Below, piece after piece: positions 16,325-34,144 of a stretch of DNA of 64,000 bases. Below the pieces are notes generated by a model that worked only from the letters and a program-made list of their open reading frames with translations, had not been told where the DNA came from and searched no databases. The position numbers and the translations under genes were made by a program. Positions within the stretch are counted from its first letter, which is position 1. The number at the start of each line of letters is the position of its first letter. Source of the stretch: Macrostomum lignano (Eukaryota); NCBI GenBank assembly GCA_002269645.1, contig NIVC01001221.1:159338-223337 (forward strand), read 5' to 3'.

Positions 16325-19300
16325 ATGGTTCGACTCGCGAGACAGCTGAGGTTGGCTTCTGCCGGAAACGGTCGGATCCGTCTGATGCTGGCCACCATCG
16401 CTACGTTCGCTTGCGTCACCTGGACTGTCGCTTTGATTAGCAGTGTTGGGAAGTTTGGCGTAAGCGGACAGAATGGTCAGATTAGCCTGGAGGATTTCGA
16501 CAGTATCCAGCAGAGGTGAGGGGTTGAGTCTTGAGTCAGTTGGTACTGTATTTTCTGATTGAGGTATCTAGGTGATTTCTTTGGTTGTTAGTTGATTGAT
16601 TTGGTTGCTAGGTGATTCATTTGGTTGCTAGGTGATTCATTTGGCTGCTAAATGATTTATTTCGTTGCTAGTTGATTGGTTTGGTTGCTAGGTGATTCAT
16701 TTGGTTGCTAGGTGATTCATTTGGTTGCTAGGTGATTGATTTGGTTGCTAGGTGATTGATTTCGTTGCTAGGTGATTCATTTGGTTGCTAGGTGATTCAT
16801 TTGGTTGCTAGGTGATTCATTTGGTTGCTAGGTGATTCATTTGGTTGCTAGATGAATGATTTGGTTGCTAGATGATTGATTTGGTTGCTAGATTATTGAT
16901 TTGGTTGCTAGATGATTGATTTCGTTGCTAGGTGATTCATTTGGTTGCTAGGTGATTCATTTGGTTGTTAAGTGATTCATTTGGTTGCTAGATGAATGAT
17001 TTGGTTGCTAGATTATTGATTTGGTTGCTAGATTATTGATTTGGTTGCTAGATGATTCATTTGGTTGCTAGGTAACTTTTGTTGCTGGATGATTGATTTG
17101 GTTGCTAGGTGATTCATTTGGTTGCTAGGTGATTCATTTGGTTGCTAGATAAATGATTTGGTTGCTAGATGATTGATTTGGTTGCTAGGTAACTTTTGTT
17201 GCTGGATGATTGATTTGGTTGCTAGATGATAATTGAATAGACCAGGATTTTGTTGTTGAGTAGCTGGCTCGATAATTGAGTACGTTGTGTTAGCAGGTGA
17301 GTTAAAATCGAAGGCTGACTAAAATTGAACATTTCGCACTCTCCTCATCATTGTCATCGAATATCCTTCAGCCTGCCCGAGCTCACTCACAAGTCGCAGC
17401 GGTGTGTTTCACCCAAATTGCCAGTCACCAACCAGCTCGTCCGAGCCAACAGACCCCGACCGATTCCCGCCGATGTCTGTCAGCGTGGAACCTCGAAGAA
17501 CTGGCTGAGAGTGTCCGAGTCCAGGGTCTACCTCAGGCCGGAGTACTCATCGGCCAACTGCACCGCGGAGCCCGTCGTGCGGCTGGACGACCAGTCGAGC
17601 GAGTTCGGCAGCGCCAGGCCGCTCCGCAGCGGAGACGAGCTGCCCAGTCTGGGATTCCGAGCTTCCTGCCAGTCACCAGACCGCACCAGCCGCCACAGCT
17701 CCGTCTACTACGGAGTGAAGCGAGCGACGTCGTCTGCAGCCGGCAGTCGCGGGGGTCGCCGACCGACAGCTCGGAGCTCGGCAACGTCATCATGCTGGGC
17801 CTGGACTCGCTGTCCCGACTCGAGAGCTTGCGGTCGCTGCCCCGAGCCAGCCACATCATGCAGGACCGCCTTGGCGCCATCACCCTGCAGCAGTACAACA
17901 TCATGGGAGACGGCACGCCCGCCGCCCTGCTGCCCATCCTGACGGGGATTCGGGAGGCCGACATGCCCGAGTCTCGGAAGGGCTTCGCTGGAGCTCGATT
18001 TCTGGACGACTCGCTTCGGTGGATCTTCCAGGACCTGCGGGACCGGGGCTTCCTCACTCTGTACGGAGAGGAGGGCAACTTCATGGGTGAGCAATTCTGA
18101 CGCTTAAAGATTACCCAGCGATCACCATTCGCAAACCGCCAAAGTACACAATTCACGTCGATCCAGTCAGAGCTCTGTTGCTGCTCCACATTCTGTCTCC
18201 GTCTCGGATTCCCTGGCTTAGTCCTTCAGTCGATCCTCTGCACTCTGTACAATAATGTCATTCTGTCTTTCAACTTCTCTGGACTTCAGTGGGAAGCAAA
18301 GATTTTAGGCCTCTCTGTCCAGAGGCTTTCGCAGTCAAGACGGCTTTAGCTGAGTAATTACGAGTAGTGAGTTGCCGAGACTCTTCTTGATTTACTCCGG
18401 TGTCCGGTTTCCAGTGTGGGACTTTTGCCTAATAACTATTAAATAAGCTGTGCTTACCACTACTTTAGCCCTGCATGATCCAGTGATTTTACTTTTTAAT
18501 GCTCTGTTGCTGGTCTTGACATGGAATTTAACGTCGCAAATTTTCAGGCACTTTCCAGCTGCGGTTTCACGGCTTCAGACGCCAGCCCACGGATTTCTAC
18601 CTGAGACCGGCGCTGCTGCAGCAGGAGCGGCTGCAGACCAACGCCATCTGCATCGGAGACGAGATCGCCAGCGCCAGAATGCTCTCGGCCGTCAAGGATC
18701 TCTTCACCCTGCACCCGGACAGGCCCAAGTTCGCCTTCACCTTTTTCGGCTCTTTGTCGCACGAGAATCAAGACCTGTCTCCCATGGACGCTGAGCTCGT
18801 CAAGTTCCTGGATTGGTTCGAGGCCGCCAACCTCAGCAGCAACACCAGCATCATTCTGATGTCGGACCACGGCCAGCGGCACGGACCGCTGAGGAACTCC
18901 ATGCAGGGCAAGCTGGAGGAGTCGCTACCGCTCATGAGCATCGCGCTGAGCAGGCAGCTGATGAGCCGCAAGAAAGATGCGGCAGAGACGCTGAGGACCA
19001 ACGCAAATAGACTCACAACGCCTGTCGACATTCACAGGACTCTGTTGAACTTATCTGGACTCAGAGACTCTACCACGCTCGCAGCGAGTGGCGCCAGCCT
19101 CACGTCGTACTCGCTGATCGATGAGGCCGTTCCGGAGACTCGCAGCTGCTCAGATGCGGGCATTCCGACTCACTGGTGCTCGTGTCTGCGGCTGAAGAAG
19201 ATTCAAGAGCCGAGCTCGAACGAGCTAGCCGTGAGAGCCGCTCGGTTCGCAGTGAACCAGATGAACTCGGCCACTGAGCCGTTCCGCCACCTGTGCCATG

Positions 19301-32700: not shown

Positions 32701-34144
32701 GACTAAATGCACTACACATACACCTACGCTATTGTGACTGCGCGCTTATTCCAATGCACTCTTTTGACTGTTGAGTCTTATAATTTGCGCTCTTTATTCA
32801 GACCACCCTACACAGCTTATTTTAGAGAGCTTGTAATGAGACACCAGGCACGTTGCAATATCTTAGGCGCGAGTTTCGTTTCTCTGCACAAAAAGGTACC
32901 CTGAAATTTAACCCTGAGGGTGCAAAATTACAGTCAACATCCAGACGAAAGAACTCTATGAATTGTTACAAGAAAGTCAGAATTCACTGTCATTTAAACT
33001 AGGCGATGCAGTTCGTGTTCAATTCATTGATGCCCACTTGTCACAAGTCGGAAGATTTGGTTGTCATTTCACTTGTTCAGGGCGAATGCTTCAGACCTCA
33101 AGCTGACAACTCAAAAAACGCGCTCTCACCGTATTCAGACTGCTCCTCTCCGTACAGAGTGACGAAGCCCCGGTCCCGCAGGTCCTGGAAGATCCACCGA
33201 AGCGAGTCGTCCAGAAATCGAGCTCCAGCGAAGCCCTTCCGAGACTCGGGCATGTCGGCCTCCCGAACCCCCGTCAGGATGGGCAGCAGGGCGGCGGGCG
33301 AGCCGTCTCCCATGATGTTGTACTGCTGCAGGGTGATGGCGCCAAGGCGGTCCTGCATGATGCGGCTGGCTCGGGGCAGCGACCGCAAGCTCTCGAGTCG
33401 GGACAGCGAGTCCAGGCCCAGCATGATGACGTTGCCGAGCTCCGAGCTGTCGGTCGGCGACCCCCCGCGACTGCCGGCTGCAGACGACGTCGCTCGCTTC
33501 ACTCCGTAGTAGACGGAGCTGTGGCGGCTGGTGCGGTCTGGCGACTGGCAGGAAGCTCGAAATCCCAGGCTGGGCAGCTCGTCTCCGCTGCGGAGCGGCC
33601 TGGCGCTGCCGAACTCGCTCGACTGGTCGTCCACCCACACGACGGGCTCCGCGGTGCAGCTGCTGCCAGAGAACTTCGGCTTTAGGTAGACCCTGGACTC
33701 GGACACTCTCAACCAATTTTCGGCACTGCCGCCCGCCTTCCAGCAGAAGTCAGCCGGCATCGGGACGGGCCGGTGATCGTGGATGAACTTTGTTTCCAAC
33801 GGTAGGTTCGGGGACTGACAATTTCGCTTACTGAATTCTTCTGTCTTTGGTGGCAAGCTGTTAAGACGAATTGGGTTATTCCATTCATGAGCTGCAATAT
33901 TTAAGAAACATTTAAAAGATGCTAGCAGCAAAATTCAAGCTTACCTATTGATAATGGCGTTAAAATGTTCTTCTTCCAGCGCCTCTGCATACTGCATATA
34001 GTCCGACGGCAGTGCGTGGTTAAAGAACCAGAGAATGGTGGCAGTGCAGGACAGACAAGCAATGGACAGGATCACCAGCGACCACAGGGAAAATCTCGTG
34101 TTGAATGTTAGTCGCTTGAATATTCGCCTGGTTTTTAAAGACAT
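29736..34144 (-). CDS. DUF229-family protein, copy 3 (intact, 702 aa)
   Basis: Exons 34144-33945, 33857-33130, 30961-30168, 30122-29736 (200+728+794+387 = 2109 nt); GT-AG with consistent phases; distinct N-terminal TM exon; 45-bp last intron. Confidence 0.92.
32430..32555 (-). mobile_element. 5'-truncated CORE-SINE copy at the intron position equivalent to 25441-25605
   Basis: + strand CCCATTTTACAGCTGAGGAAACTGAAGCAATGCAGAGTTAAGTGTCTTGCTCAAGGACAC is MIR-core-like; shares the flank ATTCAGA..AATGGTGAATAAATT with the copy 2 element. Confidence 0.7.

Follow-up and report, generated by a model that had tools for sequence, protein, structure and literature searches.

Homogenised core exons between diverged end modules in three linked DUF229 genes of the flatworm Macrostomum lignano

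How can two genes be almost identical in one exon and beyond alignment in another? This question is raised by three neighbouring genes in the genome of the flatworm Macrostomum lignano (assembly Mlig_3_7, GCA_002269645.1). They lie in a stretch of 64,000 nucleotides (nt) of contig NIVC01001221.1, called the window in the following, and coordinates are positions in this window unless another sequence is named. The genes, c1 on the forward strand and c2 and c3 on the reverse strand, have four exons each and encode proteins of the DUF229 family. We built the gene models from a self-comparison of the window, stop-to-stop reading frames, an alignment of the three gene loci and inspection of the splice sites, and found GT-AG at all junctions. 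The related segments in the self-comparison lie at ~16.2-21.1 kb (+), ~23.8-27.5 kb (-) and ~29.7-34.1 kb (-). The orientation of c1 is opposite to that of the other two: c1 and c2 stand tail to tail, with 2.75 kb between them that contain an 89-nt satellite, and c2 and c3 stand head to tail, 2.3 kb apart (Table 1). As the best explanation of their mosaic structure we propose that c1, c2 and c3 are old paralogues subject to interlocus gene conversion and to unequal crossover, and we consider this to be probably correct.

Two blocks are nearly identical in all three window copies. Island A comprises the 3' 517 nt of exon 2 and stops 12-13 nt short of the exon 2 donor of c1; island B comprises exon 3 together with short pieces of the two adjoining introns. 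The initial annotation had put the identity of exon 3 at ~97-99%, and over its 794 nt we found 98.4% for c1-c2, 98.0% for c1-c3 and 97.6% for c2-c3. Its statement that the 3' half of exon 2 is near-identical down to the synonymous sites was borne out as well: each window pair shows 5-10 differences in 517 nt, and the synonymous divergence (dS, estimated by Nei-Gojobori) of the core, meaning exon 2b plus exon 3 (1311 nt), is 0.03-0.06 for all pairs. Since the homogeneity reaches into the intron flanks while the rest of the introns is type-specific, coding constraint cannot account for this identity.

Outside the islands c2 is similar to c1 on its 5' side and to c3 on its 3' side. With c1 it has in common at least 130 nt at the end of intron 1 and exon 2a, as we call the first ~186-198 nt of exon 2, which differs at only 2 of ~186 nt and had rightly been described as nearly identical; c1 17140-18073 and c2 27188-26245 are 95% identical. 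Exon 1 of the two genes has 23 differences in 191 nt, exactly the number given before. With c3 it shares exon 4 (319 of 321 nt identical, in line with the earlier claim), intron 3 (105 of 111) and the end of intron 2, and this whole stretch is 94.6% identical over 1644 columns. The further claim that c2 and c3 have much of intron 2 in common is true of 62 nt at its start and 365 nt at its end (~95-99%) but not of the middle, which is patchy at 79-83%, and intron 2 of c3 carries ~1 kb extra compared to c2. Because this middle part and the 3' flanks (68-78%) are so different, the tandem duplication of c2 and c3 appears to be old, and the near-identity that runs from intron 2 to the stop codon would be secondary.

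The ends of c3 and c1 have gone their own way. In exon 2a, c3 differs from c1 and c2 at 77-79 positions. Its similarity to them at the nucleotide level ends at 33659-33660, the place from which the initial annotation had it diverge, and its first exon shows no DNA similarity to that of c1 (~118 mismatches in 191) and likewise none to that of c2. This exon, which encodes a transmembrane (TM) segment, had been called unrelated. It is indeed not alignable as DNA; however, phase, position, length class and an F-x-x-I tail motif ahead of the splice site are common to all, and from these features it is more likely to be a very diverged homologue. Exon 4 of c1 is strongly diverged, with 64.6% of nucleotides and ~55% of residues identical to c2/c3, close to the half of residues estimated before. 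Expressed as synonymous divergence, exon 4 of c2 and c3 differs by only 0.024, whereas exon 1 of c1 and c2 reaches 0.29, exon 4 of c1 against c2/c3 reaches 1.04 (dN/dS 0.35, dN being the nonsynonymous divergence) and exon 2a of c1 and c3 is saturated (dN 0.44). Thus the modules of one and the same gene pair differ in dS at least 20-fold. Apart from the corrections to intron 2 and to exon 1 of c3, we could reproduce all figures of the initial annotation.

The locus is present in three versions, which together hold eight copies of the gene. Besides the window there is H2 (NIVC01001204.1, sequence L004), which has the identical three-gene set at 96-98% identity to the window, and H3 (NIVC01000085.1, sequences L001 and L002, which are one region on opposite strands), which has two genes only. 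The sequenced DV1 line contains three homeologous subgenomes (S, L1 and L2) that differ by 1.9-2.4% in single-nucleotide polymorphisms (PMC10733133), and the three versions of the locus fit these subgenomes. The four-exon structure is common to all eight copies, and the introns are specific to each type. In c1, intron 2 measures 459-461 nt and intron 3 1189-1908 nt; in c2 and c3, intron 3 has 111-115 nt, and intron 2 has 1178 or 2692 nt (c2) and 2165-2170 nt (c3). The c1 genes of the other two versions are intact, with 668 amino acids (aa). As a side observation, intron 2 of c2 is ~1.5 kb longer in H2 (2692 vs 1178 nt; L004 18641-20321 vs window 25424-25266), presumably by an insertion or a repeat expansion, and the divergence between versions is dominated by large indels in general, as has been reported for the subgenomes.

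The eight copies repeat the pattern of the window. All pairs have 2-13 differences per 517 sites in island A and 3-19 per 794 sites in exon 3; in exon 2a there are 0-4 differences between c1 and c2 genes and 77-79 to c3 genes. The core has 57 variable sites (32 synonymous and 25 nonsynonymous), among which only 3 are fixed differences between paralogue types, all of them specific to c3, and 21 have both alleles in at least two paralogue types. Of 351 informative site pairs, 202 fail the four-gamete test, which requires a minimum of 16 exchange events (Rm). When CpG transitions, which are possibly recurrent, are excluded, there are still 13 shared against 2 fixed sites and at least 10 events. 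On average, copies of the same type in different versions differ at 19.1 core sites, copies of different type in the same version at 22.9 and copies that differ in both respects at 21.9 (permutation P = 0.07). Effectively, the core is one mixed pool, with no structure by type or by version. The end modules, on the other hand, sort by paralogue type without exception, and the boundaries of the blocks are sharp and the same in all three versions.

The patchwork is most obvious in c2. In a breakpoint test with 325 informative sites the maximum chi-square was 251, a value that none of 10,000 permutations attained. Read along the gene, the informative sites are c1-like, then c3-like in the last 12 nt of exon 2, c1-like again in exon 3 (11 of 12 sites) and c3-like in exon 4. 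The initial annotation had made c2 a chimera of the other two genes. It is a hybrid relative to c1 and c3, but with at least three switches it is not the product of two parents and a single breakpoint, and sequence may have been transferred in either direction. The 5' parts of c2 that were not homogenised are ~12-17% diverged from c1, and its 3' flank and the middle of intron 2 are ~17-32% diverged from c3. Such similar background depths would fit one ancient chimeric origin and long conversion tracts equally well. The same chimeric c2 recurs in NIVC01001204.1 and in the proteins P0020 and P0023, which date from the older ML2 assembly. The description of all three genes as a homogenised core with swapped N- and C-terminal modules is right as to the mosaic and the core, but the end modules are old, diverged homologues and not foreign imports.

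A different kind of exchange is suggested by H3. Its second gene, which looks like c3 at first, is c3-like (95-100%) in the 500 nt upstream, in exon 1, in intron 1 and over the full length of intron 2. Its intron 3 is c2-like (99% to c2 of H2), and 1.1 kb of its 3' flank is of c2 type at 98%, compared to patches of 68-80% to the c3 flank. The 5' part with its upstream flank thus belongs to one paralogue, the 3' part with its downstream flank belongs to the neighbour, and there is one copy fewer, as is characteristic of non-allelic homologous recombination (NAHR). From this structure the gene would be the expected product of an unequal crossover between the tandem genes c2 and c3 within the stretch from exon 3 to exon 4, with a loss of ~5.9 kb. 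Since the versions of the locus differ from one another far less than the flank of c2 differs from that of c3, the two-gene state of H3 would be derived and not ancestral.

Further family members allowed us to compare the modules separately, as the initial annotation had proposed. The only additional M. lignano relatives in our search were P0003, P0004 and P0005, which form a second DUF229 cluster on NIVC01001165.1; P0001 and P0016 share the architecture of c1, and P0002 shares that of c3. In the core, amino acid distances are 0.02-0.04 within the first cluster, 0.00-0.02 within the second and 0.34-0.37 between them. In exon 4 they are 0.45 for c1 against c2/c3, 0.47-0.48 for P0003/P0004 against P0005 and 0.49-0.53 between clusters, and in exon 2a 0.52 for c1/c2 against c3, 0.00-0.02 within the second cluster and 0.52-0.55 between clusters. 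The distances are thus incongruent: the core groups by cluster, and exons 4 and 2a are star-like. As the four exon 4 lineages (c1, c2/c3, P0003/P0004 and P0005) are about equidistant, the split of c1 and c3 seems to be nearly as old as the split of the clusters, and each cluster would have homogenised its own core. The second cluster repeats the layout, with first exons that are unrelated or 65% identical, exons 2 and 3 at ~99% and exon 4 at ~52%. On its contig (L005, 1-19248) we noted a gene of P0005 type from 470 (-), a lone exon 2 fragment at 8986-8552 (-) and the body of the P0003 gene at 17134-19245 (+). Two different first exons with a TM segment (10001-10225 and 14244-14504) lie upstream of the latter; they may be used alternatively or be left over from a deleted copy.

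Taken together, the at least 20-fold contrast in dS, the incongruent modules, the 21 shared against 3 fixed polymorphisms, the at least 16 exchange events and the hybrid gene of H3 support the earlier proposal that gene conversion or recombination has acted repeatedly at this locus. The mechanism (conversion and NAHR), the ages and the reason why tracts stop are what we infer from this pattern, and they can be put together as follows. c1, c2 and c3 would be old, linked paralogues that encode an enzyme of the alkaline-phosphatase superfamily with a type-II membrane anchor, and c1 and c3 would have parted about as long ago as their lineage split from the second cluster. Interlocus (ectopic) gene conversion would repeatedly overwrite islands A and B in all three genes and, over longer stretches, act between pairs: between c1 and c2 at the end of intron 1 and in exon 2a, and between c2 and c3 from the end of intron 2 through exon 4. 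The tracts would end where similarity has already been lost, that is in introns ridden with indels and satellites and in the fast-evolving end exons, and because they stop there the islands would sustain themselves. Exon 1, exon 2a and exon 4 would have escaped conversion in this way and kept their old divergence under purifying selection. c2 could go back to a single ancient duplication that was chimeric, or to long conversion tracts, with repeated patching since then, and an unequal crossover between c2 and c3 would have left H3 with its c3(5')/c2(3') hybrid.

Table 1. Positions of the three genes, the homogenised blocks and the associated repeats in the window
Feature	Position	Strand	Remarks
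c1, DUF229 gene	E1 16325-16515, E2 17372-18086, E3 18548-19341, E4 20771-21076	+	668 aa expected without the 1-nt frameshift
c2, DUF229 gene	E1 27426-27236, E2 26947-26232, E3 25053-24260, E4 24146-23826	-	673 aa; 5' part c1-like, 3' part c3-like
c3, DUF229 gene	E1 34144-33945, E2 33857-33130, E3 30961-30168, E4 30056-29736	-	680 aa; own TM exon and own exon 2a
Island A (3' 517 nt of exon 2)	c1 17558-18073 (+); c2 26761-26245 (-); c3 33659-33143 (-)		near-identity in all copies
Island B (exon 3, extended by ~47 nt into intron 2, ~45-50 nt over all versions, and by ~32 nt into intron 3)	c1 18501-19373 (+); c2 25101-24229 (-); c3 31015-30137 (-)
Stretch homogenised in c1 and c2 only (3' end of intron 1 and exon 2a)	c1 17140-17557 (+); c2 27188-26762 (-)		c3 old-diverged here
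Stretch homogenised in c2 and c3 only (exon 4, intron 3, exon 3, last 365 nt of intron 2)	c2 23824-25417 (-); c3 29734-31375
3' flank of c2	22811-23825	-	homologue of the c3 3' flank, 28649-29735; just 68-78% identity
G5 homopolymer, c1 exon 2	17751-17755	+	-1 frameshift; G6 in c2 (26568-26563), in c3 (33466-33461) and in both other c1 genes
20-nt minisatellite, c1 intron 1	16568-17230	+	short remnant in c2 intron 1, 27086-27188
(CAGA)85 and 28-nt satellites, c1 intron 3 (1429 nt)	20035-20740	+	same intron 111-113 nt in c3/c2
89-nt satellite array in the tail-to-tail interval of c1 and c2	21775-22791	.	~1.0 kb, 11 units; ~3.2 kb in H3 (L001 15462-18746)

The modules have a counterpart in the encoded protein. 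The match to Pfam DUF229 (PF02995) is strong (E ~1e-89; 299.8 bits for c2 and 297 bits for c3 at a cut-off of 25), with residues 157-560 aligned to positions 84-495 of the 496 in the profile, and the profile search of c2 and c3 gave weak co-matches to sulfatase and phosphodiesterase families. There is one hydrophobic stretch near the N-terminus (residues ~18-41, Kyte-Doolittle). An AlphaFold (AF2) model (predicted local distance difference test, pLDDT, 79; predicted template modelling score, pTM, 0.76) has a long helix at the N-terminus (13-45), followed by a module rich in beta structure (109-177) and an alpha/beta core (~200-470), and at the C-terminus a beta-sheet that is made up of the last strand of exon 3 (556-567) and the strands of exon 4 (593-634). 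With Foldseek the core matches the alkaline-phosphatase superfamily (S1 sulfatases, LtaS, EptA/EptC, PbgA) at E 1e-8 to 1e-6, and a sequence search of the PDB gave a weak arylsulfatase match only. D209, S212, T246, H410 and G411 are invariant in 16 aligned sequences, D209, T246 and H410 within the motifs GLDS, GDGT and SDHG, and several residues of exon 4, including three Cys, are nearly invariant. The proteins share the predicted alpha/beta core with sulfatases, LtaS and the EptA/EptC phosphoethanolamine transferases. In contrast to sulfatases they have no C-x-P-x-R motif; like LtaS and EptA they would have Thr at the nucleophile position, and they have an additional N-terminal beta module and a C-terminal beta domain that lies beyond the Pfam model. 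The likely nucleophile is Thr246, and type-II topology with a luminal, Golgi-type location is suggested. In our literature searches for a function of DUF229 we came across no characterised member, only name collisions with DUF229x entries of phage defence and family lists. A separate observation concerns c3 of the window, where Ser (codon TCG at 33301, exon 2) replaces the Thr of GDGT that is found in all 16 aligned DUF229 proteins, other c3 copies included; this singleton is either a real change or a polishing error.

The homogenised islands (residues ~127-567) correspond to the Pfam domain. Exon 1 provides the anchor and exon 2a the stem, and exon 4 supplies the remainder of a conserved domain at the C-terminus that the Pfam model does not cover. 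One might think that a variable anchor and stem, a constant core and a variable C-terminal beta domain are maintained because the combination is useful, with conversion as a mere tool. The same layout in two separate clusters speaks for such selected modular diversification, and so do the end modules, which are under purifying selection and show no decay, and the new combination in c2, which is intact in two versions of the locus. However, neutral escape from conversion predicts the same layout for the fastest-evolving exons, the combination of c2 was lost in one version, and the idea is drawn from sequence comparison. We therefore regard it as unlikely. Equally doubtful is a bolder form of it, a selected combinatorial design of flatworm DUF229 enzymes that arose twice, in which conversion keeps one catalytic engine and recombination, possibly with read-through splicing, deals out the ends for targeting and recognition. 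If this were true, the annotated transcript models that lead from c3 to c2, one of which is joined at a true exon boundary, would be read-through products.

These models lead to the question of how far the assembly can be trusted. For Mlig_3_7, PacBio reads were assembled with Canu, and the result was then polished with Pilon on the basis of Illumina and RNA-seq short reads (PMC5730564); 36% of the assembly length is in scaffolds that are chimeric between subgenomes (PMC10733133). In a redundant assembly of a neopolyploid, assembly or polishing might have created the near-identity, shuffled variants or produced a chimeric c2. Some errors seem to be present. c1 is not annotated in the window contig, and its exon 2 carries a frameshift in a homopolymer (Table 1). 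P0016 from the older ML2 assembly equals c1 of the window over residues 1-627 except at this G-run and has the frame intact, so the frameshift is most likely an uncorrected homopolymer or consensus error and would be the reason for the missing annotation of c1. The published models Mlig002440.g2 (P0019) and Mlig002440.g1 (P0018) extend from the start of c3 to the stop of c2 and span 10.3 and 11.8 kb (window 23826-34144 = L003 10001-20319; L004 10001-21763). P0018 switches from c3 to c2 at the junction of exons 2 and 3, and the transcript behind it may be real read-through; P0019 switches inside an identical stretch. We considered P0019 as a natural c3/c2 recombinant and rejected this idea: the window contig itself encodes it, the 10,319-nt span runs from the ATG of c3 to the stop of c2, and the protein consists of 252 aa of c3 followed by 538 aa of c2.

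For the mosaic as a whole, such an artefact is nevertheless very unlikely. The homogeneity includes intron flanks beyond the reach of RNA-seq reads, and each copy is placed among its own introns and flanks. Polishing cannot turn old divergence into 98% identity, because short reads cannot mis-map across differences of tens of percent. The three-gene layout with its chimeric c2 is found in two contigs that differ by 2-4%, and the ML2 pipeline reproduced the copy-specific combinations of amino acids: the ML2-era proteins P0020, P0023, P0024, P0022 and P0017 carry the same copy-specific variant sets.

A recent duplication would explain the uniformly young core. The genes would be young duplicates whose end exons and introns were replaced from distant genes or diverged explosively, and the very sharp borders between identity and non-similarity might be seen in this light: in the last 13 nt of exon 2 there are 12 differences between c1 and c2 and between c1 and c3, against 0-1 between c2 and c3. 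Such a replacement would need a donor, and none was found for exon 4 of c1 or for exons 1 and 2a of c3 among P0001-P0005 (M. lignano proteins of >50% identity from a shared-word search, which was not exhaustive). In both exon 4 and exon 2a, P0003-P0005 are separated from c1 and c3 by distances as large as that between c1 and c3 (0.45-0.55), and this equidistance makes a hidden donor for exon 4 of c1 unlikely. The diverged modules are homologous, have the same phases and evolve at dN/dS 0.2-0.35, as in orthodox old divergence. The alignable part of intron 2 is ~55-65% identical between c1 and c2/c3 although it is flanked by two blocks of 98%, and the 3' flanks of c2 and c3 are at 68-78%. Every intron and flank would have to be replaced independently, with the identical result in three versions of the locus. 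A recent origin is thus highly improbable. There is hardly any chance, finally, that extreme purifying selection, extending to synonymous sites through codon usage or RNA structure, preserved the islands without any exchange between the copies. The islands do coincide with the Pfam domain and have a high G+C content at third codon positions (GC3, 0.82), but the same exons differ from the second cluster in 34-37% of residues and are hence not frozen, intron flanks are homogenised too, 21 polymorphisms are common across paralogue types, and exon 4 has equally high GC3 yet a dS of ~1.

Several points nevertheless weigh against gene conversion between old paralogues as we propose it. Three c3-specific substitutions (exon 3 positions 36, 140 and 141; Q to E and A to T) persist within island B in all versions, and a c3-specific insertion of 6 nt (-17 of exon 3, region given as 30948-30943) is likewise kept inside the island in all of them; these survivors would require either selection or very short conversion tracts. 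Mis-mapped short reads could have shuffled some of the ~2% variants in the near-identical exons and inflated the numbers of shared polymorphisms and of exchange events. All DNA comes from one assembly, and the ML2 proteins are only a partly independent check because the same PacBio reads were used. GC3 is not in excess in the core (0.82) compared to exon 4 (0.77-0.84), and therefore there is no independent signature of GC-biased conversion. Both the conversion events and their ages are deduced from present-day sequences of one species. It is also possible that the two-gene version in H3 is a collapse of c2 and c3 in the assembly instead of a real deletion.

The window is eukaryotic DNA, rich in micro- and minisatellites, and roughly a third of it is tandem repeat. 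Apart from the arrays in Table 1 there are a 30-nt unit repeated 236 times (7.3 kb), a 15-nt G-rich unit repeated 447 times (6.5 kb, continuing past the window end), arrays of 20-, 21- and 34-nt units and (ATAG)255. The large arrays lie at 7657-14948, 57517-64000, 1-1774, 2207-3756, 43864-44883 and 46662-47899, and they cause the extreme values of GC skew. The 89-nt satellite seemed to be present in both orientations in H3, which would have hinted at recombination between inverted repeats; this was rejected, as all 64 units have one orientation. In L001 an acyl-CoA oxidase gene (ACOX domains) is annotated in the part that the window matches at ~38645-41688 (-); the neighbour of the DUF229 cluster is thus conserved between versions of the locus.

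Gene conversion between paralogues is a known mechanism and a well-described phenomenon, and we propose no new one. Classical cases are the globin, RHD/RHCE and amylase genes, and hybrid genes left by unequal crossover are known from haemoglobin Lepore, the red/green opsin arrays and CYP21A2/CYP21A1P. Mosaic divergence of linked paralogues by interlocus conversion has been described for the HMA4 tandem triplicate of Arabidopsis halleri (bioRxiv 10.1101/2025.10.29.685298), and other examples are the GOT1 paralogues of Tigriopus californicus (PMC3728101) and paralogues in Caenorhabditis (PMC3966223). As in these systems, islands of old divergence are interspersed with tracts that are almost identical, even at synonymous sites and in short pieces of the adjoining introns; different parts of the gene give conflicting trees, the paralogues have polymorphisms in common, and close copies stand in tandem and inverted orientation. 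Unlike in those systems, the boundaries can be seen in three homeologous versions of a neopolyploid locus, a second cluster has the same layout, and the middle gene is a hybrid of both neighbours; also, the pattern is known here from assembled sequence and not from populations or pedigrees. The gene in H3 resembles the classical hybrids in that one gene is missing and the 5' part of c3 is joined to the 3' part and flank of c2 inside the highly identical stretch from exon 3 to exon 4; it differs from them in being known from one assembled contig. Its protein barely differs from that of c3, because the exchanged part had already been homogenised. Our literature search turned up no report of such concerted evolution in Macrostomum.

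For work with this organism the findings have practical consequences. For users of Mlig_3_7 it is relevant that the published models Mlig002440.g1 and Mlig002440.g2 are fusions of two genes. Mapped short reads, probes for RNA interference or in situ hybridisation and CRISPR guides that are placed on exons 2 and 3 will match all eight copies, and sequence that is specific for a copy type is available in exon 1, exon 2a and exon 4 only. Beyond this, the locus provides a quantified example of exon-centred concerted evolution, together with unequal crossover, in a neopolyploid flatworm, where the three versions of the locus serve as natural replicates.

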